Positions 1 to 48,724 of a stretch of DNA of 64,000 nucleotides are shown one piece after another (positions within the stretch are counted from its first letter, which is position 1; every line of letters begins with the position of its first letter). The stretch covers positions 1 through 64,000 of the forward strand of contig NIVC01003287.1 of NCBI GenBank assembly GCA_002269645.1, given 5' to 3'. Under the pieces are notes generated by a model. The model was not told the DNA's origin. It worked only from the letters and a program-made list of their open reading frames with translations, and ran no database searches. The DNA is from Macrostomum lignano (taxonomy: Eukaryota). The position numbers and the translations under genes were made by a program.

Positions 1-288
1 GATCTCAACCCACAGGCCAACAGCCACAATACCGCCACCATCATCAAATCCGTCTGGCAATGGCGTGGCATCGATGCAGGCCACTTCGTTTGGCAGCTCG
101 CGCTCGGCTAGCACAGTCAAAGTGCCTTCGCCAATCGCTAGGCAGGTGAGCTGTCGGCCAATAGCTATTAGCAGGTGACGCTGTCCGGCTCCGCAAACGG
201 ACACTGTCCGACCAGATGGTGGCAGCCATTCAGCTAATCGACGCTTGCCAGTGGAATCCAATAGGCGAGCGGACTGCGGGCGCGTGAC
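1..288 (-). CDS. DDB1: DDB1 exon 6 (runs off the window's left edge)
   Basis: Acceptor ctcAG at 289-290. Reads VTRPQSARLL...ELPNEVACIDATP...VAVGLWVEI, matching DDB1 'ITSASVRLV...EHEVACLDITP...AIGLWTDI'. Phase 0 with exon 5. Not shown in the ORF track in this frame. Confidence 0.93.
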
Positions 289-1325
289 CTGAGATTTTAA
301 AGAAATTTTAATTTTGGTTAATATTATTCATTATGCGCTACTAATAAAAGATTTAATAAGTAGTGTAGTGTGGAAATAAACTGCAAAAAATATTTGAAAA
401 TTCTATACTTGCTACTTAAACAAAGGTAAGTAGTACAGTAAAGGACAGAGATAAAATTTGCGAAGTTCTATTTTGTGTATGAGGACTAGTACAAGAGCCC
501 CTTAAGGGGAATGTACTTGATCTCGTACTATATAGTTTGTAAGTGGCTATTAACTGCAAGCAAAAAATTTTATGAAAATAAAAAAATCAAGTAGACAAAA
601 GCAATCTGTTTGATTCTGTACACTCTTTGTACGAATTCGTGTGTGAGTTGAAAGCTCAGTGAAATGGCCATAACGGCTCCCCGTTGGAAAGTTATGCACC
701 TGCAGAGGCATAAAAGGTGAACGAGGTGCACAAAAGAGGCACTTTGGTGGTCTATTTCGTGTGTGTTTTGGAAATGCACCTGAGTGCACCTTTTATGCCT
801 AAATGTCACCAATATTTTTGAAAAGAGGCATGAAAGGTGTAAAATAGGTGAAGTGGTCAGGCAGTAGGTGAATTCTCAATTTTGATTTGTTGCGGCGGTA
901 GGGGCAGTAAAGGTGTATAAGGGGCACTGGAGGTGCGCAAAAGGTGAAGAGTAGGCTCACAAGTGAGGCACATCAGGTGCACCAGAGGTGCTGAAGGGGC
1001 GTTTGGATGACGCAGAATGTAGAAATGACACAATCGAATATATCTCTAAGTAACTAAAAATGACGCGCAAAAAATTACCGTTTCAAAAAAAGGATATATT
1101 CTAAATATACCCCATATAAAAAATGACGAAACTTAAAACAATAAAACAACACAAGATTTTTCCCTATCCCAACAAAAATAAAGCTAAAATCAGATACACT
1201 ACTTCAAGGAGAAAAACAAAGACACATATTAGACTTCAAGAGACAAAACTACAATCCTTCGAAAAACTATTTGAAGTTATAGTTATTCAAATAACTATGT
1301 AAATAACAATATTGCAACCTGCGTT

Positions 1326-4300
1326 ATATTCAGCCCCTTGAGTGTCATTTCTAAGCTCTCCATTTAATTCTATATATTGACAGCGACAGGGCTAGTTAGA
1401 GATGCTGAGAGTAGCGGGCTCTGCGTCATCTTTGCACCTGTGTATATCAGCCCATTGAGTTCATTTCTAAGCTCTCCATTTAATTCTATATATTGACAGC
1501 GACAGGGCTAGTTAGAGATGCTGAGAGTAGCGGGCTCTGCGTCATCTTTGCACTGTGTATATCAGCCCATTGAGTGTCATTTCTAAGCTCTCCATTTAAT
1601 TCTATATATTGACAGCGACAGGGCTAGTTAGAGATGCTGAGAGTAGCGGGCTCTGCGTCATCTTTGCACCTGTGTATATCAGCCCCATTGAGTGTCATTT
1701 CTAAGCTCTCCATTTAATTCTATATATTGACAGCGACAGGGCTAGTTAGAGATGCTGAGAGTAGCGGGCTCTGCGTCATCTTTGCACCTGTGTATATCAG
1801 CCCCATTGAGTGTCATTTCTAAGCTCTCCATTTAATTCTATATATTGACAGCGACAGGGCTAGTTAGAGATGCTGAGAGTAGCGGGCTCTGCGTCATCTT
1901 TGCACCTGTGTATATCAGCCCATTGAGTGTCATTTCTAAGCTCTCCATTTAATTCTATATATTGACAGCGACAGGGCTAGTTAGAGATGCTGAGAGTAGC
2001 GGGCTCTGCGTCATCTTTGCACCTGTGTATATCAGCCCCATTGAGTGTCATTTCTAAGCTCTCCATTTAATTCTATATATTGACAGCGACAGGGCTAGTT
2101 AGAGATGCTGAGAGTAGCGGGCTCTGCGTCATCTTTGCACCTGTGTATATCAGCCCCATTGAGTGTCATTTCTAAGCTCTCCATTTAATTCTATATATTG
2201 ACAGCGACAGGGCTAGTTAGAGATGCTGAGAGTAGCGGGCTCTGCGTCATCTTTGCACCTGTGTATATCAGCCCCATTGAGTGTCATTTCTAAGCTCTCC
2301 ATTTAATTCTATATATTGACAGCGACAGGGCTAGTTAGAGATGCTGAGAGTAGCGGGCTCTGCGTCATCTTTGCACCTGTGTATATCAGCCCATTGAGTG
2401 TCATTTCTAAGCTCTCCATTTAATTCTATATATTGACAGCGACAGGGCTAGTTAGAGATGCTGAGAGTAGCGGGCTCTGCGTCATCTTTGCACCTGTGTA
2501 TATCAGCCCATTGAGTGTCATTTCTAAGCTCTCCATTTAATTCTATATATTGACAGCGACAGGGCTAGTTAGAGATGCTGAGAGTAGCGGGCTCTGCGTC
2601 ATCTTTGCACCTGTGTATATCAGCCCCATTGAGTGTCATTTCTAAGCTCTCCATTTAATTCTATATATTGACAGCGACAGGGCTAGTTAGAGATGCTGAG
2701 AGTAGCGGGCTCTGCGTCATCTTTGCACCTGTGTATATCAGCCCCATTGAGTGTCATTTCTAAGCTCTCCATTTAATTCTATATATTGACAGCGACAGGG
2801 CTAGTTAGAGATGCTGAGAGTAGCGGGCTCTGCGTCATCTTTGCACCTGTGTATATCAGCCCATTGAGTGTCATTTCTAAGCTCTCCATTTAATTCTATA
2901 TATTGACAGCGACAGGGCTAGTTAGAGATGCTGAGAGTAGCGGGCTCTGCGTCATCTTTGCACCTGTGTATATCAGCCCCATTGAGTGTCATTTCTAAGC
3001 TCTCCATTTAATTCTATATATTGACAGCGACAGGGCTAGTTAGAGATGCTGAGAGTAGCGGGCTCTGCGTCATCTTTGCACCTGTGTATATCAGCCCATT
3101 GAGTGTCATTTCTAAGCTCTCCATTTAATTCTATATATTGACAGCGACAGGGCTAGTTAGAGATGCTGAGAGTAGCGGGCTCTGCGTCATCTTTGCACCT
3201 GTGTATATCAGCCCCATTGAGTGTCATTTCTAAGCTCTCCATTTAATTCTATATATTGACAGCGACAGGGCTAGTTAGAGATGCTGAGAGTAGCGGGCTC
3301 TGCGTCATCTTTGCACCTGTGTATATCAGCCCCATTGAGTGTCATTTCTAAGCTCTCCATTTAATTCTATATATTGACAGCGACAGGGCTAGTTAGAGAT
3401 GCTGAGAGTAGCGGGCTCTGCGTCATCTTTGCACCTGTGTATATCAGCCCCATTGAGTGTCATTTCTAAGCTCTCCATTTAATTCTATATATTGACAGCG
3501 ACAGGGCTAGTTAGAGATGCTGAGAGTAGCGGGCTCTGCGTCATCTTTGCACCTGTGTATATCAGCCCCATTGAGTGTCATTTCTAAGCTCTCCATTTAA
3601 TTCTATATATTGACAGCGACAGGGCTAGTTAGAGATGCTGAGAGTAGCGGGCTCTGCGTCATCTTTGCACCTGTGTATATCAGCCCCATTGAGTGTCATT
3701 TCTAAGCTCTCCATTTAATTCTATATATTGACAGCGACAGGGCTAGTTAGAGATGCTGAGAGTAGCGGGCTCTGCGTCATCTTTGCACCTGTGTATATCA
3801 GCCCCATTGAGTGTCATTTCTAAGCTCTCCATTTAATTCTATATATTGACAGCGACAGGGCTAGTTAGAGATGCTGAGAGTAGCGGGCTCTGCGTCATCT
3901 TTGCACCTGTGTATATCAGCCCCATTGAGTGTCATTTCTAAGCTCTCCATTTAATTCTATATATTGACAGCGACAGGGCTAGTTAGAGATGCTGAGAGTA
4001 GCGGGCTCTGCGTCATCTTTGCACCTGTGTATATCAGCCCCATTGAGTGTCATTTCTAAGCTCTCCATTTAATTCTATATATTGACAGCGACAGGGCTAG
4101 TTAGAGATGCTGAGAGTAGCGGGCTCTGCGTCATCTTTGCACCTGTGTATATCAGCCCCATTGAGTGTCATTTCTAAGCTCTCCATTTAATTCTATATAT
4201 TGACAGCGACAGGGCTAGTTAGAGATGCTGAGAGTAGCGGGCTCTGCGTCATCTTTGCACCTGTGTATATCAGCCCCATTGAGTGTCATTTCTAAGCTCT

Positions 4301-7300
4301 CCATTTAATTCTATATATTGACAGCGACAGGGCTAGTTAGAGATGCTGAGAGTAGCGGGCTCTGCGTCATCTTTGCACCTGTGTATATCAGCCCCATTGA
4401 GTGTCATTTCTAAGCTCTCCATTTAATTCTATATATTGACAGCGACAGGGCTAGTTAGAGATGCTGAGAGTAGCGGGCTCTGCGTCATCTTTGCACCTGT
4501 GTATATCAGCCCCATTGAGTGTCATTTCTAAGCTCTCCATTTAATTCTATATATTGACAGCGACAGGGCTAGTTAGAGATGCTGAGAGTAGCGGGCTCTG
4601 CGTCATCTTTGCACCTGTGTATATCAGCCCCATTGAGTGTCATTTCTAAGCTCTCCATTTAATTCTATATATTGACAGCGACAGGGCTAGTTAGAGATGC
4701 TGAGAGTAGCGGGCTCTGCGTCATCTTTGCACCTGTGTATATCAGCCCCATTGAGTGTCATTTCTAAGCTCTCCATTTAATTCTATATATTGACAGCGAC
4801 AGGGCTAGTTAGAGATGCTGAGAGTAGCGGGCTCTGCGTCATCTTTGCACCTGTGTATATCAGCCCCATTGAGTGTCATTTCTAAGCTCTCCATTTAATT
4901 CTATATATTGACAGCGACAGGGCTAGTTAGAGATGCTGAGAGTAGCGGGCTCTGCGTCATCTTTGCACCTGTGTATATCAGCCCCATTGAGTGTCATTTC
5001 TAAGCTCTCCATTTAATTCTATATATTGACAGCGACAGGGCTAGTTAGAGATGCTGAGAGTAGCGGGCTCTGCGTCATCTTTGCACCTGTGTATATCAGC
5101 CCCATTGAGTGTCATTTCTAAGCTCTCCATTTAATTCTATATATTGACAGCGACAGGGCTAGTTAGAGATGCTGAGAGTAGCGGGCTCTGCGTCATCTTT
5201 GCACCTGTGTATATCAGCCCCATTGAGTGTCATTTCTAAGCTCTCCATTTAATTCTATATATTGACAGCGACAGGGCTAGTTAGAGATGCTGAGAGTAGC
5301 GGGCTCTGCGTCATCTTTGCACCTGTGTATATCAGCCCCATTGAGTGTCATTTCTAAGCTCTCCATTTAATTCTATATATTGACAGCGACAGGGCTAGTT
5401 AGAGATGCTGAGAGTAGCGGGCTCTGCGTCATCTTTGCACCTGTGTATATCAGCCCCATTGAGTGTCATTTCTAAGCTCTCCATTTAATTCTATATATTG
5501 ACAGCGACAGGGCTAGTTAGAGATGCTGAGAGTAGCGGGCTCTGCGTCATCTTTGCACCTGTGTATATCAGCCCCATTGAGTGTCATTTCTAAGCTCTCC
5601 ATTTAATTCTATATATTGACAGCGACAGGGCTAGTTAGAGATGCTGAGAGTAGCGGGCTCTGCGTCATCTTTGCACCTGTGTATATCAGCCCCATTGAGT
5701 GTCATTTCTAAGCTCTCCATTTAATTCTATATATTGACAGCGACAGGGCTAGTTAGAGATGCTGAGAGTAGCGGGCTCTGCGTCATCTTTGCACCTGTGT
5801 ATATCAGCCCCATTGAGTGTCATTTCTAAGCTCTCCATTTAATTCTATATATTGACAGCGACAGGGCTAGTTAGAGATGCTGAGAGTAGCGGGCTCTGCG
5901 TCATCTTTGCACCTGTGTATATCAGCCCCATTGAGTGTCATTTCTAAGCTCTCCATTTAATTCTATATATTGACAGCGACAGGGCTAGTTAGAGATGCTG
6001 AGAGTAGCGGGCTCTGCGTCATCTTTGCACCTGTGTATATCAGCCCCATTGAGTGTCATTTCTAAGCTCTCCATTTAATTCTATATATTGACAGCGACAG
6101 GGCTAGTTAGAGATGCTGAGAGTAGCGGGCTCTGCGTCATCTTTGCACCTGTGTATATCAGCCCCATTGAGTGTCATTTCTAAGCTCTCCATTTAATTCT
6201 ATATATTGACAGCGACAGGGCTAGTTAGAGATGCTGAGAGTAGCGGGCTCTGCGTCATCTTTGCACCTGTGTATATCAGCCCCATTGAGTGTCATTTCTA
6301 AGCTCTCCATTTAATTCTATATATTGACAGCGACAGGGCTAGTTAGAGATGCTGAGAGTAGCGGGCTCTGCGTCATCTTTGCACCTGTGTATATCAGCCC
6401 CATTGAGTGTCATTTCTAAGCTCTCCATTTAATTCTATATATTGACAGCGACAGGGCTAGTTAGAGATGCTGAGAGTAGCGGGCTCTGCGTCATCTTTGC
6501 ACCTGTGTATATCAGCCCCATTGAGTGTCATTTCTAAGCTCTCCATTTAATTCTATATATTGACAGCGACAGGGCTAGTTAGAGATGCTGAGAGTAGCGG
6601 GCTCTGCGTCATCTTTGCACCTGTGTATATCAGCCCCATTGAGTGTCATTTCTAAGCTCTCCATTTAATTCTATATATTGACAGCGACAGGGCTAGTTAG
6701 AGATGCTGAGAGTAGCGGGCTCTGCGTCATCTTTGCACCTGTGTATATCAGCCCCATTGAGTGTCATTTCTAAGCTCTCCATTTAATTCTATATATTGAC
6801 AGCGACAGGGCTAGTTAGAGATGCTGAGAGTAGCGGGCTCTGCGTCATCTTTGCACCTGTGTATATCAGCCCCATTGAGTGTCATTTCTAAGCTCTCCAT
6901 TTAATTCTATATATTGACAGCGACAGGGCTAGTTAGAGATGCTGAGAGTAGCGGGCTCTGCGTCATCTTTGCACCTGTGTATATCAGCCCCATTGAGTGT
7001 CATTTCTAAGCTCTCCATTTAATTCTATATATTGACAGCGACAGGGCTAGTTAGAGATGCTGAGAGTAGCGGGCTCTGCGTCATCTTTGCACCTGTGTAT
7101 ATCAGCCCCATTGAGTGTCATTTCTAAGCTCTCCATTTAATTCTATATATTGACAGCGACAGGGCTAGTTAGAGATGCTGAGAGTAGCGGGCTCTGCGTC
7201 ATCTTTGCACCTGTGTATATCAGCCCCATTGAGTGTCATTTCTAAGCTCTCCATTTAATTCTATATATTGACAGCGACAGGGCTAGTTAGAGATGCTGAG

Positions 7301-10108
7301 AGTAGCGGGCTCTGCGTCATCTTTGCACCTGTGTATATCAGCCCCATTGAGTGTCATTTCTAAGCTCTCCATTTAATTCTATATATTGACAGCGACAGGG
7401 CTAGTTAGAGATGCTGAGAGTAGCGGGCTCTGCGTCATCTTTGCACCTGTGTATATCAGCCCCATTGAGTGTCATTTCTAAGCTCTCCATTTAATTCTAT
7501 ATATTGACAGCGACAGGGCTAGTTAGAGATGCTGAGAGTAGCGGGCTCTGCGTCATCTTTGCACCTGTGTATATCAGCCCCATTGAGTGTCATTTCTAAG
7601 CTCTCCATTTAATTCTATATATTGACAGCGACAGGGCTAGTTAGAGATGCTGAGAGTAGCGGGCTCTGCGTCATCTTTGCACCTGTGTATATCAGCCCCA
7701 TTGAGTGTCATTTCTAAGCTCTCCATTTAATTCTATATATTGACAGCGACAGGGCTAGTTAGAGATGCTGAGAGTAGCGGGCTCTGCGTCATCTTTGCAC
7801 CTGTGTATATCAGCCCCATTGAGTGTCATTTCTAAGCTCTCCATTTAATTCTATATATTGACAGCGACAGGGCTAGTTAGAGATGCTGAGAGTAGCGGGC
7901 TCTGCGTCATCTTTGCACCTGTGTATATCAGCCCCATTGAGTGTCATTTCTAAGCTCTCCATTTAATTCTATATATTGACAGCGACAGGGCTAGTTAGAG
8001 ATGCTGAGAGTAGCGGGCTCTGCGTCATCTTTGCACCTGTGTATATCAGCCCCATTGAGTGTCATTTCTAAGCTCTCCATTTAATTCTATATATTGACAG
8101 CGACAGGGCTAGTTAGAGATGCTGAGAGTAGCGGGCTCTGCGTCATCTTTGCACCTGTGTATATCAGCCCCATTGAGTGTCATTTCTAAGCTCTCCATTT
8201 AATTCTATATATTGACAGCGACAGGGCTAGTTAGAGATGCTGAGAGTAGCGGGCTCTGCGTCATCTTTGCACCTGTGTATATCAGCCCCATTGAGTGTCA
8301 TTTCTAAGCTCTCCATTTAATTCTATATATTGACAGCGACAGGGCTAGTTAGAGATGCTGAGAGTAGCGGGCTCTGCGTCATCTTTGCACCTGTGTATAT
8401 CAGCCCCATTGAGTGTCATTTCTAAGCTCTCCATTTAATTCTATATATTGACAGCGACAGGGCTAGTTAGAGATGCTGAGAGTAGCGGGCTCTGCGTCAT
8501 CTTTGCACCTGTGTATATCAGCCCCATTGAGTGTCATTTCTAAGCTCTCCATTTAATTCTATATATTGACAGCGACAGGGCTAGTTAGAGATGCTGAGAG
8601 TAGCGGGCTCTGCGTCATCTTTGCACCTGTGTATATCAGCCCCATTGAGTGTCATTTCTAAGCTCTCCATTTAATTCTATATATTGACAGCGACAGGGCT
8701 AGTTAGAGATGCTGAGAGTAGCGGGCTCTGCGTCATCTTTGCACCTGTGTATATCAGCCCCATTGAGTGTCATTTCTAAGCTCTCCATTTAATTCTATAT
8801 ATTGACAGCGACAGGGCTAGTTAGAGATGCTGAGAGTAGCGGGCTCTGCGTCATCTTTGCACCTGTGTATATCAGCCCCATTGAGTGTCATTTCTAAGCT
8901 CTCCATTTAATTCTATATATTGACAGCGACAGGGCTAGTTAGAGATGCTGAGAGTAGCGGGCTCTGCGTCATCTTTGCACCTGTGTATATCAGCCCCATT
9001 GAGTGTCATTTCTAAGCTCTCCATTTAATTCTATATATTGACAGCGACAGGGCTAGTTAGAGATGCTGAGAGTAGCGGGCTCTGCGTCATCTTTGCACCT
9101 GTGTATATCAGCCCCATTGAGTGTCATTTCTAAGCTCTCCATTTAATTCTATATATTGACAGCGACAGGGCTAGTTAGAGATGCTGAGAGTAGCGGGCTC
9201 TGCGTCATCTTTGCACCTGTGTATATCAGCCCCATTGAGTGTCATTTCTAAGCTCTCCATTTAATTCTATATATTGACAGCGACAGGGCTAGTTAGAGAT
9301 GCTGAGAGTAGCGGGCTCTGCGTCATCTTTGCACCTGTGTATATCAGCCCCATTGAGTGTCATTTCTAAGCTCTCCATTTAATTCTATATATTGACAGCG
9401 ACAGGGCTAGTTAGAGATGCTGAGAGTAGCGGGCTCTGCGTCATCTTTGCACCTGTGTATATCAGCCCCATTGAGTGTCATTTCTAAGCTCTCCATTTAA
9501 TTCTATATATTGACAGCGACAGGGCTAGTTAGAGATGCTGAGAGTAGCGGGCTCTGCGTCATCTTTGCACCTGTGTATATCAGCCCCATTGAGTGTCATT
9601 TCTAAGCTCTCCATTTAATTCTATATATTGACAGCGACAGGGCTAGTTAGAGATGCTGAGAGTAGCGGGCTCTGCGTCATCTTTGCACCTGTGTATATCA
9701 GCCCCATTGAGTGTCATTTCTAAGCTCTCCATTTAATTCTATATATTGACAGCGACAGGGCTAGTTAGAGATGCTGAGAGTAGCGGGCTCTGCGTCATCT
9801 TTGCACCTGTGTATATCAGCCCCATTGAGTGTCATTTCTAAGCTCTCCATTTAATTCTATATATTGACAGCGACAGGGCTAGTTAGAGATGCTGAGAGTA
9901 GCGGGCTCTGCGTCATCTTTGCACCTGTGTATATCAGCCCCATTGAGTGTCATTTCTAAGCTCTCCATTTAATTCTATATATTGACAGCGACAGGGCTAG
10001 TTAGAGATGCTGAGAGTAGCGGGCTCTGCGTCATCTTTGCACCTGTGTATATCAGCCCCATTGAGTGTCATTTCTAAGCTCTCCATTTAATTCTATATAT
10101 TGACAGCG
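1326..10108. repeat. 118-bp tandem satellite, about 74 copies
   Basis: Period 118 read from line offsets. Unit gtgtatatcagccccattgagtgtcatttctaagctctccatttaattctatatattgacagcgacagggctagttagagatgctgagagtagcgggctctgcgtcatctttgcacct. The 1-nt-shorter variants occur only before about position 3100. Confidence 0.99.
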
Positions 10109-11255
10109 CCGCTATAGTTTAAATCCATGTTTGAATTTACTGCGCTCGTACATTTTAACTTATACTTGATATTGACAGGTTAGCTCAGAAATATTTCGCC
10201 AGCTTCTTTAGTAATGGCTTTTTATCAAAATACAATTGGGCTTTGCTTTTACTTTTGGTTTGGTCACCTGCTGTGAGCGTTCCACTTTTTATCTATATAT
10301 TGTTTTGTATTATGCACAGCGGTTTGTTTGGAGGTGTGTTTCGCGCTTTTCTCGATCTTTCCACTGTAGCTGGATTTTGAGTAAAGATAAGAATCGCAGT
10401 TCTCACGATTGCTTAAAAGCAAATACGTGCTCTGGGTATGCTCAAGATTGCGCAATGCTCGGTGACAGTGATGGGTGGTTCATGGTGGAAGACACCTATC
10501 TAAGCAAATTTGTTGCACCAAACTTATGATTGCGCCATTATCGTAAAGAATAGTGTCAAGCAGTTCCAAATATGTAAAATTGTAAACTTTATTTAGTCAC
10601 CAAAGAGAAATTTTATCTACTCTTTGATTTGTTGATGACTGACTTCATCCTAATTTTTGAGCATATACGTCTTTTTCTTGCATATTTAATCTATTTCTCG
10701 AATTTCTATTTTGCATCATTCATTTAATTCCTATCCAATTCATTGTGTGTCATTTATTTGTTATCCACTGCCCACTGTATATTGACAGCAGCGGATCTCA
10801 CAGAGCTACTCAATGAATTGAAAATGCAGAAATAACTGAGTATTCGAAACCCAAACTGGATTAGGGTCGATCAGTGAGTCTGGCTGTGAGGCTGTGAATG
10901 AGGCAGTGAATGAGGCTGTGAATGAGGCTGTGAATGTGAGTGGGGCATATTGTACCTAATGTATGTTTCATGCTGGTTAATGCGCATGTTTCATTTTGAA
11001 TCAAAGTAATTTGGTGTCAAAATGAGTCACTACTGAAATGAAGCAGTCCACCCCTTTGAGTCTAAAAGCATAGTGGATTTGACACGTACTATGAACGTGA
11101 AATATTTTGACCACCCCATTCCGAACCAATGAAAATTAGAGTGAACTTGTTGATGTCAAACTGCCGCTTCATATAAAATGGGACTTCAGTTGGCCTTTCA
11201 AAAAGCCAGATTTCTATTTGTCAATTAATTTCATTTTTTCAATAAATTAACCCAA

Positions 11256-12811
11256 ATGTCCAAACAATTGGAGTTCATAAAACAGCTGATAAGCCGCAAA
11301 GGCAAATGCTATGACGTCGCTAAGCGGCAAAAGTCGTTTGAGAAAGAGCTCGCCGCGTCTGATCGATTCCAGTTAATGGTAAGTGAAGGTGAAGAGCAAT
11401 ATTTTTACCAATAACTGCCCTGTCTCTACCATTCTACCCTGTCTCTACCATTCTACCCTGTCTCTACCATTCTGCCCTGTCTCTACCATTCTACCCTGTC
11501 TCTACCATTCTGCCCTGTCTCTACCATTCTGCCCTTTCTCTACCATTCTGCCCTGTCTCTACCATTCTACCCTTTCTCTACCATTCTGCCCTGTCTCTAC
11601 CATTCTGCCCTGTCTCTACCATTCTACCCTTTCTCTACCATTCTGCCCTGTCTCTACCATTCTACCCTGTCTCTACCATTCTGCCCTGTCTCTACCATTC
11701 TACCCTGTCTCTACCATTCTGCCCTGTCTCTACCATTCTACCCTGTCTCTACCATTCTGCCCTGTCTCTACCATTCTGCCCTTTCTCTACCATTCTGCCC
11801 TGTCTCTACCATTCTGCCCTGTCTCTACCATTCTGCCCTGTCTCTACCATTCTGCCCTGTCTCTACCATTCTGCCCTGTCTCTACCATACTGCCCTGTCT
11901 CTACCATTCTGCCCTTTCTCTACCATTCTGCCCTGTCTCTACCATTCTGCCCTGTCTCTACCATTCTGCCCTGTCTCTACCATTCTGCCCTGTCTCTACC
12001 ATTCTGCCCTGTCTCTACCATTCTGCCCTGTCTCTACCATTCTGCCCTGTCTCTACCATACTGCCCTGTCTCTACCATTCTGCCCTTTCTCTACCATTCT
12101 GCCCTGTCTCTACCATTCTGCCCTGTCTCTACCATTCTGCCCTGTCTCTACCATTCTGCCCTGTCTCTACCATTCTGCCCTGTCTCTACCATTCTGCCCT
12201 GTCTCTACCATACTGCCCTGTTTCTACCATACTGCCCTGTCTCTACCATTCTGCCCTGTCTCTACCATTCTGCCCTTTCTCTACCATTCTGCCCTGTCTC
12301 TACCATTCTGCCCTGTCTCTACCATTCTGCCCTGTCTCTACCATTCTGCCCTGTCTCTACCATTCTGCCCTTTCTCTACCAATAACTGCCCTGTCTCTAC
12401 CATTCTGCCCTGTCTCTACCAATAACTGCCCTGTCTCTACCATTCTGCCCTGTCTCTACCATTCTGCCCTGTCTCTACCATTCTGCCCTGTCTCTACCAT
12501 TCTGCCCTGTCTCTACCATTCTGCCCTTTCTCTACCAATAACTGCCCTGTCTCTACCATTCTGCCCTGTCTCTACCAATAACTGCCCTGTCTCTACCAAT
12601 AACTGCCCTGTCTCTACCATTCTGCCCTGTCTCTACCAATAACTGCAATTTCTCTACTCAGACCGATGCGTCACAGCCCGGATCAGCTGAGCAGCCGCCC
12701 ACCGCAGCCCAGCAGCCGCCCGGCCCAGCTGAGCGGCCCAAGTCGCATGCCGGCAGGAGTACATTTGCCCATTCGGTGACTGCCTACCAATGCACTATTT
12801 CAACATGCTAA
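11256..12811 (+). CDS. Putative two-exon 90-aa protein of unknown function (exons 11256-11378 and 12662-12811), nested antisense in the DDB1 intron
   Basis: ATG, 41 codons, GTAAGT donor at 11379; acceptor tttctctactcAG ending at 12661; both phase 0; second exon GC-rich, 49 codons then TAA. No recognisable homology. Confidence 0.55.
11407..12646. repeat. 19-bp minisatellite (accattctgccctgtctct), about 65 copies, forming the intron of the nested ORF
   Basis: Direct period-19 repeat. The 419-aa ORF 11383-12642 is an artefact of it. Confidence 0.97.
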
Positions 12812-13886
12812 TATAACTATTTTCTAACATGTGAAACATGTAAAGATAATATAATATTTGAAAACTTATTAATTATAACTAAAATTCGTATGCACATAAA
12901 ATATAATTATAAAATTTGCAAGTAAATAATATATATAACTAAAATAGCTGGACTTGTGTCTAATGCGATTTATTTGAAACCCTTTGGAGCTGCGATCGAA
13001 TTATTTTCGCATTTCTACTATTAGTAGCATGTAATGCAAAATTTATAGTTTTTTGCGAAACTTTTATGTGTCATATTTCGAAATATTCTGGTCGGATATA
13101 TTTTTTTGGAGTGTCATATCTGTGATGTGGCCTGTCGGGTATCCCCTACGATGTGCGTCATTTCTTTGTTTTGGGTCATCACTGATAACATAGGGGCGCA
13201 GAAAGCGCGTGAAAGGTGAATTAGAGGTGCATAAGGTGTACATATGCGGCGTAAATATGTATACAGGTGCATTTCCAAAACACGCTCGAAATTATAGACC
13301 CCTAAAGTGCCTCTTCTGTGCACCTCGCTCACCTTTCATGCCTATGCACGAATATTAACGCATTAAGAATTCGTAACAAAAAATTAACTGAGAGTTACAT
13401 ATATGCTAATCGCTGTTATCCCCTTCCTAATCCTGACAAACCACGAAAAAACATTTCCAAAACTGATCACCTTTCGTGCCTCCAGTGCACACTGTACACC
13501 TTTTCTGCACCTCCACCGCAGCACACCTTTTTTTCACCTTTCACTCCTCCAATGCCCCCAATTCCTATTTTATTCACCTTTTGTGCCTCAACGCACACTG
13601 TGCACCTTTTATGCACCTAACTCACCTATGACACCTGTGCCCCTACCGCCTATTTCGTGCCTTAAATTCACCTTCCGCCCCTGCAGAGGCACTCAGGTGA
13701 ACAAAAGGTGCACAAGTGGCATAAAAAAGGCATAGGAGAGGCGAAAGTGAGGCAGAAGGTGCAAAACTCTTCACCTTTCATGCCTACTTTAAAAACTCAA
13801 AATCCAACGGGCTCGCCTCTTAATCTGAGGCGGTGCCCTAAACGCCCCCTCCCCCAGCAACTAAGAAGATTAATGATTCTCATTAC

Positions 13887-14408
13887 CTGAACAATCTGTC
13901 CGCCAAGAACATTCTGGCACAGGTAGGTGCGCTCGGCAGTTTCAAATGCGGGCATTGGCACCTCTTCAATCTCCATAGCCGGATCGCAGGGCGAACAGCT
14001 CATTAATAGAGTCTTGGTCTGATTCTGGAAGGTGATAATGATGAAGTTATCGAAGCTGCTGCCAGCTGTTCGCAGATTCCAGACGCCTTTGATGCCGGCC
14101 AGATCGATGTTAACCATCTCGTTGATGCCGACTCCGCTGCGAATGATTCTCAGACTGCCGTCTTTGAATGCGCCCGAACAGGTGACTAGCTGTCCCTGGC
14201 CCAGGTTGTCAATGTCAACAACTGCCATGTCAACCACTGGAGCAATATTGACAAAGCTTTCCAATACGCTGACAAAATTGCCCGAACTATCGGCCTCTAC
14301 TAGTAGGCGAATCAATTGACTATCGCCGAAACGGGAGCCAATGAAAACAACATTGTTGTCAAGGTAACTGATTGTCTCCGGTATAGAAATTTCGCCAAGT
14401 AGTTCAAC
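13887..14408 (-). CDS. DDB1: DDB1 exon 5
   Basis: [32 protein letters not shown]...[26 protein letters not shown]...GQIVQ. 522 nt, phase 0/0, AG and GT present. Confidence 0.96.
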
Positions 14409-14614
14409 CTGGAAATGTTTTTACATTGAAGTTGATTGTAGTAATTAGATGCCGAGACAATTATTTCATAGTTGCTCCCGCCGTTTACCCAGCACAAGCT
14501 AAGTTAAAACGTTTTGAGCTTTGTGCCAGCAGAAATAGACTTGATCCTGCTAGTTAGAACGAGTTCTAACAAAACAATAAACGGAGCTCAAATGTTATTT
14601 TAACACCAACAGAC

Positions 14615-14854: not shown

Positions 14855-15084
14855 CTGTCAATGGAAATGAGTAATTTAACAATTAGTTGAGTTTCTTAGA
14901 AGCACAAGAGCCAATAATCGGGTAAGTCGGACCAGTTTCTTAGAAAGCGATTTCATAGAATGGCGAGGTGATTGGTTTCTTACAAATATTGGATAAATGA
15001 TTTCTTAGAATGATTACGTATTTTATTTCTTAAAATTGCTTGAATAATATTTTTTTAAATGGCTGGGAATTTTTATTTGAATTG

Positions 15085-15757
15085 CTAGGTAAGTAATGCC
15101 TTAGAATTGCTGGGTAAGTGGTTTCTTGGAATCGCTGGGTAAATGATTTCTTGGAATCACTGGGTAAGTGGTTTCTTGGAATCGCTGGGTAAATGATTTC
15201 TTGGAATCGCTGGGTAAGTGGTTTCTTGGAATCGCTGGGTAAATGATTTCTTGGAATCACTGGGTAAGTGGTTTCTTGGAATCGCTGGGTAAGTGGTTTC
15301 TTGGAATCGCTGGGTAAGTGGTTTCTTGGAATCGCTGGGTAAGTGATTTCTTGGAATCGCTGGGTAAGTGGTTTCTTGGAATCGCTGGGTAAGTGATTTC
15401 TTGGAATCGCTGGGTAAGTGGTTTCTTGGAATCGCTGGGTAAGTGATTTCTTGGAATCACTGGGTAAGTGATTTCTTGGAATCGCTGGGTAAATGATTTC
15501 TTGGAATCACTGGGTAAGTGGTTTCTTGGAATCGCTGGGTAAGTGGTTTCTTGGAATCGCTGGGTAAGTGGTTTCTTGGAATCGCTGGGTAAGTGGTTTC
15601 TTGGAATCGCTGGGTAAATGATTTCTTGGAATCACTGGGTAAGTGGTTTCTTGGAATCGCTGGGTAAGTGATTTCTTGGAATCGCTGGGTAAGTGATTTC
15701 TTGGAATCACTGGGTAAGTGATTTCTTGGAATCGCTGGGTAAGTGGTTTCTTAGAAT
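15085..15757. repeat. 25-bp minisatellite (tgggtaagtggtttcttggaatcgc) in DDB1 intron 3
   Basis: Period 25, about 27 copies with diverging edges. Confidence 0.95.
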
Positions 15758-16569: not shown

Positions 16570-18150
16570 TTCGGCATCTAACAACAACAGTCAGGCGTGG
16601 GACAATGTCAACAGGGCGCGTTTCAGGGCCTTGGCGCCAGCGTAGGCAGCACAGCCGGCGTCAGCCAGCAGGCAGTCGACGAAACGCCGAGTGCGCGCCT
16701 GTCCCCGCCGGTAGAGTGCAGCGTGAGCAACGACTCGGCTAGAATGATATGGCCTGCCAGCTGGAGTCGCCGACGGCGCAACAGCTCGCTCAGTTCCCTG
16801 GGACGAGACAGGCCGGTGCGGCGATAAAGTGCAGCATTGGTGACTCGCTCGTATCCGAATCCGTCAGCGTCCTGCGCCCAGGTCTCGGCGTTGTACAACA
16901 GGACGGTCTCGACCACCGCATGGAACAACGCTGCCCTCTGGCGGTCAGGCAGGGCCTCGGACTGCAGGGCAGCCATCGCGGAACGGAAGAAAGCCCAGGC
17001 AAGTCCACCGTACCTTGCGAACATCAGGCAACAGACCGCCGAGGTAGACGAACTGCTGACGACGTGGAAGCCTCGTCACCTGCCCATCAGCGCCTCGACA
17101 GAAAATTGCAGTCTCGATGTCGTCCGGCACGCAGAGCACGACGGTCTTCTGCGTGTTGACTACCAGGCCAACACTCGCCCAGTCAAGCAACAGAACGAAC
17201 AGGAACGGCGCAAGCGCATCTCGAAGCACCCCGGACTCCGGAGGATGTCTTAAAGAAGTCCGATAGGCCGTCCAGTCTTGAAACAGCAGCTTTCGTATCA
17301 CGGTACATCGCCATGATGGCGAATATCAGCTGCTCTGGCACGTTGTACGCACAGATCACCTTTGGGAGCACAGACCTTACGGCCGAGTCGAATGCCTTCT
17401 TGATGTCTATGAAGATGACAATCAGGATCGATTGGGGTGTCCGCGCTTCCTCGATAACTTGCTGAATAGCCAGGATCTGCTGCGTTACTGTGCCGCGATG
17501 GGGCCGGAAGCCGTTCTGCTCAGGACGCAGGTACGGATCCAGTACGGGCTGCAACCGCGATAACAGCATCCGGATGAACAACTTCGCAGTGCAGGACTGA
17601 AGGCAGATACCTCGATGCTCCTCTAGCCGTGTGGTGTCCGGCTTTTTAGGAACTGCGACGATGTGCACCGTGGTCCATTCGTTGGGAGCACGCGATTCAT
17701 CACCCTGGCGACCTCACTGGCCACACAGTAGATGCGCGGCAGAGACGGCCCGAATGGCGTCATCAACAGCAGCCTGCAGTCGCTGCAGATAGACAGCCGC
17801 CAAGGCCTCCTCTGCCTCGCGGGTTGGTCTCCTGCTCAAGCGGAGTCTTTCCAGCTATTCCCTCGCTTGCCGAATCGCGGAGTCGTCTTGCCATACCGGC
17901 TGCCCCTACTAGGCTGGTCGTATCAGCGGGACTGCTTGTTCCACAGCAGCTCGAACAGCAGCACACAACTCCACGTACTCGGCACCTCCACGCTTGCCGC
18001 CGAGCGCAGTGATGAAAGTGCTGGTAAAGCGGCTGTTTGTGTCAACATCCAGATTGTGACTTGTGAGACAAAGGTCACAGATGAGGAGTCGATGATCGAA
18101 CTGCAGAGTCAGCGGCATGATGGCATTGTTACTGGCATCCTGGGTCTTAA
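16570..18150 (-). mobile_element. Degenerate RTE-clade non-LTR retrotransposon (endonuclease end plus RT) in DDB1 intron 2
   Basis: Frameshifted motifs DHRLL (APE end), HRGICL, QNGFRPHRGT, FIDIKKAFDS, LAPFLF, VETVLLYNAETW, RRRRLQLAGHI. Boundaries are approximate. Confidence 0.85.
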
Positions 18151-27027: not shown

Positions 27028-27057
27028 TAGATAGATAGATGGATAGATAGATAGATG

Positions 27058-27091
<34 letters not shown>

Positions 27092-27141
27092 CAGATGGAT
27101 AGATAGATAGATAGATAGATGGATAGATAGATAGATAGATG

Positions 27142-27173
<32 letters not shown>

Positions 27174-27233
27174 TATAGATAGATAGATGGATAGATAGAT
27201 ATATAGATAGATGGATAGATAGATAGATAGATG

Positions 27234-27300
<67 letters not shown>

Positions 27301-27337
27301 GGATAGATGAATAGATAGATAGATAGATGGATAGATC

Positions 27338-27372
<35 letters not shown>

Positions 27373-27405
27373 GGATAGATAGATATATAGATAGATGGAT
27401 AGATG

Positions 27406-27460
<55 letters not shown>

Positions 27461-27493
27461 GGATAGATAGATAGATGGATAGATGGATAGATC

Positions 27494-27524
<31 letters not shown>

Positions 27525-27525
27525 C

Positions 27526-27556
<31 letters not shown>

Positions 27557-27557
27557 C

Positions 27558-27592
<35 letters not shown>

Positions 27593-27712
27593 GGATAGAT
27601 GGATAGATAGATAGATGGATAGATGGATAGATATATAGATAGATGGATAGATAGATAGATAGATGGATAGATAGATAGATAGATAGATAGACAGACAAAC
27701 ACACAGATAGAC
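27028..27712. repeat. (GATA)n microsatellite in a PHF12 intron
   Basis: GATA/GGAT tetramer run. Confidence 0.98.
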
Positions 27713-31747: not shown

Positions 31748-33187
31748 ATGAGCCGAAAGCGTCGCAGCGACAGCTCGAGTTCGGACGCGCCTCCCGCTTC
31801 CCCAACTCCTATCTGCATCATCTGCGACCAAGCTGCAGTCGGTGTGGCTCCGTTATTCCGCTGCCACATGTGCAGTCAACACCTCAGTGTCGATGTGGCC
31901 AATCTATTCAAGCTCAAGGAGGAGGTCGACGAGCTGCTGCGTGCCTACTCACAAGAGTCACAAGGTGCAGCAGGTGCAGCTGGCCATGCAGCGCTGCTGC
32001 GACACCGACAAGACGCTGAGTCGCTGCGTCGTCTTGCTCTCGACATCCAACAGCAGCTGCAAGAGGTCAATCACAAATTCGATTTGGTACAGCAACACAT
32101 CGACTCGTTTCGTAGCAGGGTGACGGGCCAGCTCTCAGGTGTGCTTGAGGCAGTGCGTGTGTGCGAGCGGGACCTCGAGGACGTCTCCAGCTACAAGCAG
32201 GAGGTGGCCACGGCGGAGGCTGCAGGCGACATGGCGGAGCTGCTTCGCCTGGTCCAGTCCATGCACGAATCGCTTGGAGACTTGGAGGCCGACTTTGAGA
32301 GGTCAGAGCGGCTGCGCAGAGACCAGAGCGACAATGAGGAGCTGCAGCTGCGGCTTCTGGGCCAGCTCGAGCGGCTGGTCGGCATTTGTGCGGGACACAG
32401 CGAAGAGGGCGACTAGTCGAGAGAGGCTGCGGTAACCGCGACTTCTGAGGAGATAGAGGCTGCTCAGAGAATTTCGGAGCCGATGGTCTTCAGTCATGAG
32501 GTGAAACTGGATCGCTCAGTTCAATGGCTGGCTGTGTGCAGCGACACCAGCGGATTTGTTGCTGCACAAACAGGCCGTGTGGTTCCCGTCGACTCGGCGA
32601 GAGACCGCAGAAAACCTCTGCCCCAGCCCTGCATCCTGGCATCATTCTCTAGCTTAGTAGGAGGAGAGAGAGAACACCTACTGGTGCTGTCTGTGGACGG
32701 CTCACAGAAGCTGCGGTGCCACTGCGACATCGACTGGAAGAAGTACATGTGTGGCCTTCACTGCGACCGTCAGCTGCTGTTCATTGCTCAACCTGATACA
32801 GTGACAGTGACGGAACTGAGCGGTCGTGCGGTGCGTCGAGTCCGCCCATTCATCAAGGACTTCGGTGACATCAAGGGAATCGGCGGCAACGCAGCCTCCG
32901 TGTTTGTGTCCAGTGGAAACAAAATTGTTGCATTCAGCAAAGCCACTTGGCAGATGGAGACGGTCATCACGCTGTCTCAGCTTCCTTTTGCTGCACTGGG
33001 CAACCTGGCGACCCACGACAACTGTATTCTTGTGATAGATAGGCGTGACAATCAGGTGCACAGAGTGCGCATTGACACCCAGCAGCTGGTCGCCTCCTTT
33101 CCGACTCGGCAGCATCCGTTCAAAAATTTTTCTAGTCCAGAGGATGCGGCCGTAGACAGCAGAGGTCGTGGAATAATATTCCAATAA
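31748..33187 (+). pseudogene. B-box-like/coiled-coil/NHL (TRIM-NHL-like) paralog A: in-frame TAG at 32414-32416 and 3' truncation
   Basis: Near-identical to 44133-45806. TAG replaces TGG (Trp) and the frame continues to 33187. Homology stops after AVDSRGR. Confidence 0.8.
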
Positions 33188-36240: not shown

Positions 36241-37192
36241 CTGGCAGCAAAGTGACGTCACCTGTATAGCCGTGCGATGATTGGTCGAAACAATGGGGTG
36301 CGGGTCAAAATAGGTTTACAAGGGGATTACTCGTGACTGGAAGCAGAATGGATGTGGCTTACATGCCTGGTTATAATCAAGCTATAATGTCTGCGGGCTT
36401 GGTGGGAGAGAATAGGATAGGGAATAGAGGCAGTAGGGATAAGATGAGAAGAGATCGAGGAGACAAGGAAAGTGATTAGAGAAAAAAGCCTTGAAATTGA
36501 GCAGGACTGCAGCTGTTGCTATTGAAGTTTCAAAGGAGCCGCGATGGCCCCGGATAGACTAATTGTCTATTGTCTTGTTGTCTAAGAGTTAACCTACCCC
36601 GGCCGTGCATGTTGCACCCCAGTAAATTGCACCATTGGACATGCTAAAAGTAGGAAGCTACCTAGCTTACGCCGGTATAGGAACGTGTACTTGCGTTTCG
36701 CTATATATTTTATCTCTTCAAGAGAAAGCATGTGTGCTTGAGGGGGCCGTAGCCCGGGTCTATGACAATTGACTGCCACAATTTGACTGCGGTCAATTTG
36801 ACTGCCGAGCAATTTGACTGCCGACAAAATGACTGCGGACAAAATGACTGCCAACAATTTGACTGCCAACAATTTGACTGCCAACAAAATGACTGCCGAC
36901 AAAATGACTGCCAACAATTTGACTGCCGACAATTTGACTGCCAACAAAATGACTGCCGACAGAATGACTGCCAACAAAATGACTGCCAACAAAATGACTG
37001 CCAACAAAATGGCTGCCGACAAAATGACTGCCAACAATTTGACTGCCAACAAAATGACTGCCGACAAAATGACTGCCAACAATTTGACTGCCGACAATAT
37101 GACTGCGGCAATTTGACTGCCGAGCAATTTGACTGCCTCAAATACTACACGTACATCCTCTTTATATATGTATTGATCATTGTATTGAGCAA

Positions 37193-37495
37193 GGGGGTTG
37201 TAGCCTAGTGGTTAGGGCGTCGGACTCACGACTTGAAGGTCGGGGGTTCGATTCCCGATCCCTCTGCAACAATTTGTGTCCTTGAGCAAGACACTTAACT
37301 CTGCGTTGCTTCAGTTCACCCAGCTGTAAAATGGGTACCAGCATTAGCTGGGGTAATTGAGGGTGTGTGTGGCGACCCCCCAGTCCTTGGACTGAACAGC
37401 CGTACGCAGCCTTCAGATGCGCCGCGCAATAGCTGCGGCTGAGCTGTCGGTTGCACATCTGCCCATTGGGCAGGTGTAATCAATTATTATATTAT
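37193..37495 (+). mobile_element. tRNA-derived SINE, family B copy 2 (inside the MULE-like element)
   Basis: A box TAGCCTAGTGG, B box GGTTCGATTCC, central GTGTCCTTGAGCAAGACAC...CACCCAGCTGTAAAATGGGTACC, AT-rich tail. Confidence 0.85.
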
Positions 37496-38767
37496 TGATC
37501 ATATTTATGCAGGACTAAAAATTCGTTCTTTACGAGTAATGATGCAAGCTACATTTGCCTTTCAGCAATACATGCATTTGTTATGACGAATGTTCAAACG
37601 GATCATCTATACATAGCTATGGTTTGTTGAGCAGAGTGCTCTTTATAGAGCTAGCTTACCATTAACTTTAGCTTTTGACTGATTAATCCAAATATACTAA
37701 ATATTAGTCTATTAGGCAACTAATAGATTGTATAGTACGAGTCTATGGTATTGCTTTTAAATCTGGAAGATTCCATCCAATATATGAGATTAATATGACA
37801 TAGGAGAAAGAAAGAACCTTTAAATGTGGAAATCATCACCTTAATAGTAGAGTCTAGACTAGTAGGCAATGCTAGGACATATCAGATATGCCAAGTCACA
37901 ATTAGTGAATCTATATATATATACATGCATGTAAATCGATAATAAGCCCATAAAATTAATATAGAAAACAAGAGGCCACCCCTCCTCCTCTCTCCCCCAG
38001 TCCCTCAATGTTCGCCACTTTAAACCCCCCTCTCTCTCTCACAATGGAGTTTTATGAGTTTGCTCGCCACCTAAACTTGTGGGCTCCACTGATCACCCTC
38101 TCCTTTCATTTTTTGACTCCAAACCCCCAAGTTGGCAACCCCAAACACCAAAACCAAAAGCTTAGCCTAGTTGTGCACAGCTTTATATTGACGAATGAAA
38201 TTGAAAAGCTTGCTAGGCGCATTCTCATTATGCAAAAGAGGATAGAGAGATGAGAGAGTAGTTGAGAAAGAAGACAGGGGAAAGGTGAGATTGTAGAGAT
38301 GAGATAGTGGAGATGAAAGGAGAGATGAGACTCAATGAGAGAGTAGAAATGAGAGAGATGAAAGGAGAGATGAGAGATGAGAGAAGACAAGAGAGGGAGA
38401 GAGTATAGAAGAGAAGAAAAGAAAAGGGAAGAAAGGAGAAAGGAAAGAGAGGAGTCAAAAGAGGGGAAGAGAAGAGTACACAGGAGAGAGGTGAGAGAAC
38501 ATACGAGTACATGTATAAGAGTAAGATGAGTCGATGACAGATAAGAGAGGGGAGATGAGAGAGCAGAGACGAGAGAGAAGTGAGAAAACAGAAGAGAAGA
38601 TAGAAGGTTCAAAGGATGCAAGGAACATAGGGATCTAGAGGCCAGAGTTTTTCTGACATTCTGCGCCGCACCCCAGCCAACAATATCAATAGTTTGCCTC
38701 CAATCCTTATTTTCCACGAATTTAATCTATGTTATGTTTAACTCTATCCTAATTCCTAACTAATAAT

Positions 38768-48710: not shown

Positions 48711-48724
48711 GAGCAGAGCATCAC

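Follow-up and report, generated by a model that had tools for sequence, protein, structure and literature searches.

CACTA elements of the plant dSpm/I type have short terminal inverted repeats (TIRs), a 3-bp target site duplication (TSD) and motifs of 12-16 bp, in both direct and inverted orientation, crowded into subterminal regions several hundred bp long, and they frequently contain internal tandem arrays. The terminal motif of the CMC superfamily is CMCWR, while PIF/Harbinger elements have a 3-bp TSD with the consensus TWA. The hallmark of Chapaev elements is their CAC/GTG termini, and the TSD consensus of Chapaev3 is likewise TWA (PMC4079192). SmTRC1 and the other TRC elements are CACTA-related transposons of Schistosoma mansoni, Aedes and Tribolium, and their TIRs start with CCC (DeMarco et al. 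2006, PMC1636069). SmTRC1 is described there as having 54-bp TIRs, a 2-bp TSD, a Transposase_21 ORF and a 3' tandem repeat, and as giving rise to spliced transcripts; one of its insertions fills an intron. In the genome of the flatworm Macrostomum lignano, tandem repeats account for ~13% and annotated DNA transposons for ~3% (PMC5730564 supplement), and a literature search on M. lignano DNA transposons or satellites found no family-level description.

The locus analysed here is an intron of a DDB1-family gene on M. lignano contig NIVC01003287.1, of which positions 1 to 64,000 make up the stretch of DNA examined, referred to below as the window. Tandem and inverted repeats are extremely abundant in the window. 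The host exon located 3' of the intron (1-288, minus strand) is of the DDB1 family and is truncated where the contig begins. The exon located 5' of the intron (13887-14410, minus strand), whose donor is CAG/GTAATGA, encodes a Beta-prop_RSE1_2nd domain (2e-36), and the best named homologues of its protein are DDB1. The best matches in the DDB1 protein search were 47-48% identical and all shorter than 470 aa, and none came from M. lignano. The intron extends from 289 to 13886 (13,598 bp), and 96.6% of it is occupied by a 13,132-bp element. Subtracting this element and the 3-bp TSD leaves 463 bp, in agreement with the intron of ~460 bp that an earlier reading of the letters alone (the sequence-only reading) had proposed for the site once emptied. 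A compact DDB1 intron of ~0.46 kb would have grown to 13.6 kb, with a predicted antisense transcription unit within it. A search of the window against Rfam returned a single tRNA only, distant from the element. The outer boundaries are those of a genuine non-autonomous class II (TIR) transposon insertion, and in the interpretation that we favour, with a probability of roughly one half, the 13.1 kb is composite, with an interior module lying within a foldback-like element of ~0.9 kb.

The left TIR, CCCGTTGGA (680-688, plus strand), is matched exactly by the inverted 9-mer TCCAACGGG on the right (13803-13811, minus strand), and the trinucleotide CTC, a putative TSD, stands immediately outside both, at 677-679 and, in direct reading, at 13812-13814. 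On each side, 17 non-conserved nucleotides separate the 9-mer from the outermost copy of a 16-mer, AGGCATRAAAGGTGAA; the outermost left copy is AGGCATAAAAGGTGAA (706-721, plus strand) and the outermost right copy AGGCATGAAAGGTGAA (13770-13785, minus strand). The inverted termini, the 17-nt spacing and the external CTC described in the sequence-only reading proved exact at 677-688 and 13803-13814. Its statement that each terminus is found once holds as well, the exact 9-mer being present at just two sites in 64 kb, both at the ends of the element. When up to 2 mismatches are allowed, the 16-mer occurs 8 times in 64 kb, as against 0.07 expected, and all copies are confined to the arms, 3 in the left and 5 in the right, where 5 out of 5 are on the minus strand. 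Taken alone, the 9-mer is unenriched (7 matches in 64 kb with at most one mismatch, 6.6 expected), and it owes its significance to the placement of both copies 17 nt outside the outermost 16-mers. The CTC present on both sides is within the 2-4 bp typical of the TSDs of CMC elements; it is read from one insertion, and a match of 3 bp has a chance of 1/64. Alternatively, the direct repeat is 5 bp long, GGCTC (675-679 and 13810-13814), overlapping the TIR-terminal GG, or the TSD may be the 2-bp TC accompanied by a chance C. Scans of metagenomes with the terminus pattern and with a satellite 31-mer gave 0 matches each, and the single match to the pattern in a scan of prokaryotic genomes, in an Omnitrophota MAG, was discarded, ~1 being expected by chance.

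One could suppose that there is no single element here at all, and that two unrelated repeat-rich patches happen to lie beside a resident satellite and gene, the 9-bp match and the CTC being coincidental. The repeat-richness of the window, the lack of over-representation of the 9-mer at one mismatch and the 1/64 chance of the 3-bp repeat would all suit this idea. We nevertheless regard it as very improbable, given that both exact 9-mers stand at an identical 17-nt offset outside 16-mers that are absent elsewhere in the 64 kb (a chance of ~4^-9 for a fixed offset), that the polarity of the arm motifs is mirror-symmetric, and that similarity ceases exactly at the 9-mers.

Several assignments were considered and rejected. 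CACTA/En-Spm in the strict sense (CACTA...TAGTG or CAC...GTG) does not fit termini of the form CCCGTTGGA...TCCAACGGG, and PIF/Harbinger and Chapaev3 were set aside since the TSD is CTC and not TWA. For piggyBac, CCC...GGG is present, but the flanking GGCTC and CTCGC are without TTAA. Arms that fold back are also a feature of Foldback (FB) elements, but those of the present element consist of irregular repeats, and its duplication measures 3 bp (5 at most) instead of 9. As for a Helitron in the interior, its ends, TTTGGATGAC... and ...ATAACATAGGG (or ...GTAACAAA), are unfit on either strand (5'-TC, 3'-CTRR, subterminal hairpin, A/T insertion, no TSD). The designation "CACTA/EnSpm-like" given in the sequence-only reading can be kept in part: the polar subterminal repeats, the short TSD, the non-autonomous character and the CCC start speak for it, but the terminus is neither CACTA nor CAC.

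In the left arm (680-1001, plus strand) the subterminal repeats follow the pattern AGGYRCAnAAAGGTGnA and run mainly in plus polarity; the arm also has an internal hairpin (706-722 with 784-800). The right arm (13382-13811, minus strand) comprises an AT-rich stretch and then, at 13450-13802, subterminal repeats that are mostly of minus polarity. The arms hold 18 of the window's 31 AAGGTG/CACCTT hexamers, which form clusters there only, and the segment 701-785 is an inverted, collinear copy of 13348-13261 (49/55 and 28/32 identical); these two results bear out the motif-dense, inverted arms that had been claimed from the letters. The layout, with a short motif in multiple copies, direct and inverted, restricted to the arms and mirrored in polarity, is that of CMC-type subterminal regions. 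The segment 13261-13348, an 87% identical inverted copy of the left module 701-785, belongs to a 170-bp arm-like hairpin block (block X, 13196-13365) that has no 9-bp terminus and is absent at a second locus described below; neither TSD nor microhomology was found at the edges of the block. No similarity to the arms is seen in the intron flanks outside the TIRs, which rules out that the element is inserted in an older copy of itself; similarity ends exactly at the 9-mers. No similarity was found, either, between the arms or the interior and the remaining window or the flank of the second locus. The outer element, reconstructed as a 935-nt sequence from 680-1001 and 13199-13811, folds back on itself so that its two termini pair (z=-12).

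The interior begins with an A-rich unique part (1002-1311, plus strand) bearing ATGACRC motifs at 1007, 1025 and 1060, which is followed by a 118-bp satellite (1312-10108, plus strand; 74.6 copies, 99% identical), each monomer of which bears two GYGTCAT motifs in right-end polarity. Next come a unique spacer (10109-11255, plus strand) that includes a 12-bp mini-array (10887-10936), and a 90-aa ORF in two exons. Exon 1 (11256-11378, plus strand) is followed by a GT donor at 11379, and exon 2 (12662-12811, plus strand) includes the stop codon; the intron between them houses a 19-bp minisatellite (11415-12638, plus strand; 63.9 copies). The right unique part (12812-13195, plus strand) has GYGTCAT at 13068, 13111 and 13155 and ends in ...ATAACATAGGG. 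An inverted match between 1006-1036 and 13180-13149 is weak (z~1.8 versus shuffles); these inverted ends lie 4 and 15 nt from the boundaries of the interior and are mismatched at the very tips.

The product of the 90-aa ORF is 100% identical to the annotated protein BOX15_Mlig001263g3 / Mlig018228g1, and several M. lignano gene models exist, in which exon 1 is identical and exon 2 variable, being divergent or frameshifted. Protein searches found no homologue outside M. lignano, and Pfam gave no significant match. Host gene capture is therefore unproven, since the ORF is an orphan with several M. lignano models and no outside homologue. No transposase ORF was found within the element, a protein search with the concatenated stop-free translations of the arms and the interior ends had no matches, and exact-protein look-ups for the NHL ORF, P0122 and the arm ORF found no record.

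The interior, satellite included, is found again on contig NIVC01001458.1 (L002), where its identity is ~99.9%, with 99.55% over 9.8 kb. For the unique spacer, 1283/1285 aligned bases are identical, with an additional 21-bp length difference, and in the right unique part 545/545 are identical, up to 13195; these figures come from one other copy, whose contig begins inside the satellite. Homology ends at position 13381 of the window, 430 bp before the right TIR. There is no arm motif or TIR in the 9.6 kb of L002 past this breakpoint, and no 16-mer (up to 3 mismatches) or TIR anywhere in L002; neither terminus recurs in the window or in L002. The neighbours differ too: directly after the L002 breakpoint come a hairpin and an ORF that is tyrosine-recombinase-like (Crypton-like), and zf-C2H2_jaz and DHHC sequences are also present. 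The L002 copy may be misassembled. The sequence-only reading had seen a single non-autonomous mobile unit that carries the satellite and the ORF as cargo. The TIR-bounded insertion stands, but the interior recurs in L002 without the right arm and TIR, and the ORF is an orphan with multiple models. That reading had also named, as an observation that would go against it, arms that never bracket similar interiors; half of this is what is seen, on the right side of the one other copy.

The last sequence common to both loci is AGAATTCGTAACAAA(A) at 13366-13381 (plus strand), which matches at 15 of 16 positions the 16 nt following the L002 junction. Of the 9571 16-mers of the L002 flank, 4 match, all of them at this site. 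Because of these 16 nt, the L002 copy is seen to reach past block X into the right arm of the window. This match is not predicted by simple nesting with 13195 as the end of the interior, a model that it weakens. A possible, if rather doubtful, explanation is that there is a single family of non-autonomous CACTA/CMC-like elements of ~13 kb, with the satellite and the ORF as normal internal parts. L002 would then derive from such an element by 3' truncation or rearrangement, another TE or a deletion having cut it 16 nt past the site of block X, and block X would be an internal duplication specific to the window copy. Homology running 16 nt beyond the X site agrees with this, as do the Crypton-like ORF and the hairpin that abut the L002 breakpoint; the arms are similar in size (322 vs ~360 bp) and collinear if X and the AT-rich stretch are counted as internal, the outermost TIR and TSD pair is the sole perfect one, and SmTRC1 has an internal tandem repeat too. 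However, the remainder of the right arm is absent from the 9.6 kb that follow in L002 and enter host genes, no second both-ended copy was found in the window or L002, and the AGGGGCG repeat and the repeat unit restored across 1001 and 13199, to which we now turn, are left unexplained.

The interior is bracketed by a 7-bp direct repeat, AGGGGCG (left copy at 995-1001), located exactly at the switch from AGGTG-type to ATGAC-type motifs. The repeat may represent the TSD of the interior module, GCG if its length is 3 bp, or else microhomology at the junction. When position 1001 is joined to 13199, an arm-type repeat unit is restored, 22/30 identical to 920-949. The same junctions lend themselves to a capture scenario (transduplication), in which the arm element took a ~12-kb segment from an L002-like locus through template switching during gap repair, with AGGG as microhomology at the right junction, in the manner of Pack-MULE and Pack-CACTA. 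L002 reads ...CATAGGG/AGAATT and the arm GAAGGGGCGCAG, so that a switch within AGGG could have produced CATAGGGGCGCAG, the junction present in the window, and the two interior copies are near-identical. We consider this scenario improbable: the arm sequence at the junction is duplicated (AGGGGCG on both sides), not deleted, which is what a clean insertion would give; the scenario does not account for the 16-nt match beyond X; the many variant copies of the ORF make it resemble part of a repeat family and not a single-copy host gene; and 12 kb is very large against known captures, typical captured fragments being far smaller.

We thus return to the composite element, which is called composite because its interior is a separate multi-copy module. 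A presumed autonomous relative would supply a transposase in trans. This enzyme would recognise both the 9-bp termini CCCGTTGGA and the ~16-bp subterminal motif, repeated in opposite polarity through two arms of ~320-430 bp, and would mobilise everything between the termini by cut-and-paste, leaving the 3-bp CTC duplication. The 12.2-kb interior (118-bp satellite, two-exon orphan ORF and 19-bp minisatellite) would most likely have entered the ~0.9-kb foldback/MITE-like element secondarily, by nested insertion or by repair-mediated acquisition at AGGGGCG. Unequal exchange probably expanded the satellite from a segment bearing the module's own ATGACRC end motifs. The termini, the motif polarity, the TSD, the multi-copy interior and the second locus without a right arm are read directly in the DNA. 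The transposase and the succession of events are inferred, and the composite may or may not have moved in one piece. What is known here is ordinary TE biology, with nothing unexpected for transposons. A bolder proposal, which we hold to be unlikely, is that the 13.1 kb in its entirety is still active today as a non-autonomous CMC-like element of the CCC type, which transposes as one unit and moves an 8.8-kb satellite array and a putatively transcribed orphan gene to new loci. Such unit transposition, if true, would offer a tangible means by which tandem arrays are seeded; these account for ~13% of the genome and fill many introns.

A well-delimited TIR element that contains a satellite and an annotated, putatively transcribed orphan ORF gives a handle on the spread of arrays into the introns of a regeneration model. 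It is also a candidate family for annotation in a species whose DNA-transposon families are essentially undescribed. Both contigs end in or beside the element, which probably accounts for breaks in the assembly.

Like Pack-MULE and Pack-CACTA elements, the M. lignano element is a non-autonomous TIR element with coding sequence that does not look TE-derived between its arms; unlike them, it carries an orphan ORF with repeat-borne copies and no parental host gene, in a far larger interior. It shares with FB, with Tetris of Drosophila and with the pearl/MITE-like elements of bivalves long inverted arms of degenerate short repeats, strong hairpin potential and a satellite tied to TE ends; in contrast to FB, which has a 9-bp TSD and regular tandem arms, the satellite motif ATGACRC belongs here to the interior and not to the arms. 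With plant CACTA/En-Spm elements it has in common a short TIR, a 3-bp TSD, arms packed with motifs in the layout of TnpA-binding sites, and internal arrays, whereas its termini are CCCGT..., of which the first three positions alone fit CMCWR. Overall, the architecture may be called CACTA/En-Spm-like, and the closest described elements appear to be CACTA-related ones with CCC ends from flatworms and insects, such as SmTRC1, the likeness being one of structural description. TRC elements are recognised by a CCC TIR with a 2-bp direct repeat; the CCC start is present here, and the flanking duplication is read as 3 bp. SmTRC1 differs by its 54-bp TIRs, 2-bp TSD and Transposase_21 ORF from the present element, which has a perfect TIR of 9 bp, a TSD of 3 bp as read and no transposase within. 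The two have in common a flatworm host, a TIR starting with CCC, an internally repeated motif in the TIR region, a short TSD, internal tandem repeats, spliced transcripts (putative in the present element) and an insertion that fills an intron.

The outer ends of the 13.1-kb element at 680-13811 very likely mark the insertion of a genuine element with terminal inverted repeats (TIRs). At the left (677-721), ACGG and CTC are followed by the 9-bp terminus CCCGTTGGA, the 17-nt spacer AAGTTATGCACCTGCAG and a 16-nt arm motif, AGGCATAAAAGGTGAA; at the right (13770-13814), the 16-mer TTCACCTTTCATGCCT and spacer ACTTTAAAAACTCAAAA precede the terminus TCCAACGGG, CTC and GCC. The inverted termini, spacer length, 16-mer and flanking CTC described in the sequence-only reading agree exactly with the sequence, and each terminus is single-copy as claimed there: the exact 9-mer occurs in the 64 kb at the two element ends and nowhere else. 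The spacer is not conserved at either end. At one mismatch the 9-mer is found at chance frequency (7 matches in the 64-kb window, 6.6 expected); the weight of the terminus observation comes not from 9-mer frequency but from 16-mer enrichment, 9-mer placement and arm symmetry. The 16-mer AGGCATRAAAGGTGAA, with up to two mismatches, is present in 8 copies in the 64-kb window against 0.07 expected, all confined to the two arms and in mirror polarity. Relative to the outermost 16-mers, each exact 9-mer lies 17 nt further out, and a 9-mer match at a fixed offset has a probability of about 4^-9. The arms also hold 18 of the window's 31 AAGGTG/CACCTT hexamers, which cluster nowhere else. They are roughly collinear when one is inverted, and the inverted similarity suggested earlier is borne out by 87% identity between 701-785 and inverted 13261-13348. 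Similarity ends at the 9-mers, and the intron sequence beyond them is unlike the arms. The reconstructed outer element (935 nt) forms a strong foldback with its termini paired.

The host intron runs from 289 to 13886 on the minus strand (donor CAG/GTAATGA, acceptor TCTCAG/GTCACG). Removal of the element and one CTC leaves 463 bp, in agreement with the ordinary intron of about 460 bp described in the sequence-only reading. The host gene product carries RSE1/DDB1/CPSF1 beta-propellers; its best named homologues in a protein search are DDB1, at just 47-48% identity over returned matches of at most 468 aa. The gene is truncated by the contig start: the first 288 bp of NIVC01003287.1 are DDB1 exon sequence, and the intron follows. 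The annotated product, of 545 aa, ends before the element-bearing intron; full-length DDB1 has about 1,140 aa. Another intron of this gene contains, at 16600-17700 on the minus strand, a GC-rich fragment (53-58%) with a reverse-transcriptase domain (RVT_1, 4e-11), which looks like a LINE-type insertion.

Repeats are reported to make up more than half of the M. lignano genome, tandem repeats accounting for about 13% and DNA transposons for about 3%, and chromosome duplications to make the DV1 assembly redundant (PMC5730564). The richness of the window in tandem arrays fits this tandem-repeat content. Tandem Repeats Finder returned 75 rows for the whole window. In most genes the coding ORFs are separated by long mini- and microsatellite arrays of high homogeneity, among them 15072-15757 (25 bp), 27028-27695 (8 bp), 51724-53305 (38 bp) and 58410-59934 (AGAC x384). 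Several very long arrays fall within a large minus-strand gene at 46929-63421 (Rap_GAP domain, 7e-17), which appeared by eye to be tuberin/TSC2-like. A foldback-like structure at 36765-40314 consists of two inverted arrays of the 15-bp unit TGACTGCCAACAAAA, about 3 kb apart and complementary at 93% over up to 135 nt, with a tRNA-Val (CAC) gene (37192-37267) immediately inside the left array. Roughly concentric with it is a large inverted duplication of an NHL-repeat gene (31797-33168 and 44350-45763, 79-96% identical), which gives a stretch of about 14 kb a palindromic arrangement.

Within the element, the left arm (680-1001) is followed by an A-rich unique stretch with ATGACRC motifs (1002-1311), a 118-bp satellite (1312-10108; 74.6 copies, 99% identical), a unique spacer (10109-11255), an ORF (11256-12811), a unique stretch with the ATGACRC motif in inverted polarity (12812-13195) and block X, an arm-like hairpin (13196-13365). 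The right arm (13366-13811) comprises an AT-rich stretch, repeats (13450-13802) and the TIR (13803-13811). Each satellite monomer has two ATGACRC/GYGTCAT motifs in right-end polarity (148 over the whole array), and short exact matches connect it with both ends of the interior, a suggestive rather than strong sign that the interior's own end sequences gave rise to the array.

The two exons of the ORF (11256-11378 and 12662-12811, with a 19-bp minisatellite at 11415-12638 in the intron) encode a 90-aa protein that is 100% identical to the M. lignano hypothetical proteins PAA52179.1 and PAA67728.1 (BOX15_Mlig001263g3, BOX15_Mlig018228g1). Tracing the contigs that encode this protein places the window at 1-64000 of NIVC01003287.1, assembly GCA_002269645.1. 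At least six further models exist in an older UniProt proteome; exon 1 is identical throughout and exon 2 variable or frameshifted. A protein search found no homologue outside M. lignano, and the protein has no Pfam domain. The ORF behaves like a repeat-borne orphan rather than a host gene that was captured.

A second copy of the interior is found on contig NIVC01001458.1 (L002), which begins within the satellite array and matches window positions 2842-12617 at 99.55%; in the unique parts 1283 of 1285 and 545 of 545 bases are identical, and the same ORF is encoded. Both module-bearing contigs end in the module or right beside it. The homology has a sharp limit at window position 13195, after ATAACATAGGG. 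The following 16 nt of L002, AGAATTCGGTAACAAA, agree with 13366-13381 at 15 of 16 positions, and not by chance, since just 4 of 9571 16-mers from the L002 flank match the right arm within one edit, all overlapping this spot. Beyond these 16 nt no similarity to the window was found, and neither the arm motif (at up to three mismatches) nor the TIR was found anywhere in L002. Past the breakpoint, L002 10346-12184 holds a hairpin directly after the truncated module, with arms of about 100 bp (about 10378-10690), and then an ORF of 373 aa. The match of this ORF to Phage_integrase (tyrosine recombinase) is weak and below the Pfam cut-off (E=0.0018); it is tentatively a possible Crypton-like element. 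Further on, L002 carries host genes that encode zf-C2H2_jaz and DHHC proteins. At the level of sequence, the L002 comparison establishes that the satellite and ORF form a repeated module, duplicated or moved very recently, that the window has the 170-bp block X in addition, and that the right subterminal repeats and right TIR are absent from the L002 copy.

A composite origin, in which the interior entered secondarily by nested insertion or repair-mediated acquisition, is given a probability of about 0.5. It is favoured by the 7-bp sequence AGGGGCG, repeated in direct orientation at 995-1001 and 13192-13198 and placed exactly where AGGTG-type motifs switch to ATGAC-type, and by the restoration of an arm-type repeat unit when 1001 is joined to 13199. 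The left arm and X together would make a symmetric foldback; the distance from the 85-bp module to the left terminus is 21 nt, and to the right edge of X 18 nt. The interior has weak inverted ends of its own, at 4 nt from one of its boundaries and 15 nt from the other; these ends, the 935-nt foldback and the occurrence of the interior in L002 without the right arm point the same way. Against a simple nested model, L002 continues for 16 nt into right-arm sequence and no target-site duplication (TSD) was found at block X. That continuation, and the similar sizes of the arms, would be accounted for by the single family of roughly 13-kb elements first proposed, an appreciably less probable origin, which requires an unexplained truncation in L002 and makes the AGGGGCG junction a coincidence. 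Capture specifically from a source locus is improbable, and other explanations share the little that is left. Under any of these origins, all 13.1 kb could be moved by a transposase that recognised the outer ends. The single mobile unit with cargo envisaged at the outset finds partial support: the TIR-element ends stand, and the interior also occurs without the right arm.

We regard the element as real but ordinary. It is a new TIR element of M. lignano, non-autonomous and unclassified, and its interior bears a satellite and is best read as composite. Its initial assignment to CACTA/EnSpm holds for the architecture, not for the terminus, which is neither CACTA nor CAC. The CACTA terminal motif is CMCWR, which the terminus fits in its first three bases only. 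CAC is invariable at Chapaev ends (PMC4079192). PIF and Chapaev3 were rejected because the TSD is CTC and not of the TWA type, piggyBac because the target duplication is not TTAA, FB because it is not 9 bp, and Helitron because the required ends are lacking. The element is CACTA-like in its architecture and possibly a candidate for CMC/TRC. In SmTRC1, a flatworm element, and its relatives from Aedes and Tribolium, the TIRs start with CCC and contain a repeated motif, a tandem repeat is present internally and the TSDs are 2 bp (PMC1636069). These elements are like the present one in every feature that could be compared except the TSD, which is 2 bp in SmTRC1 and its relatives and reads as 3 bp here.
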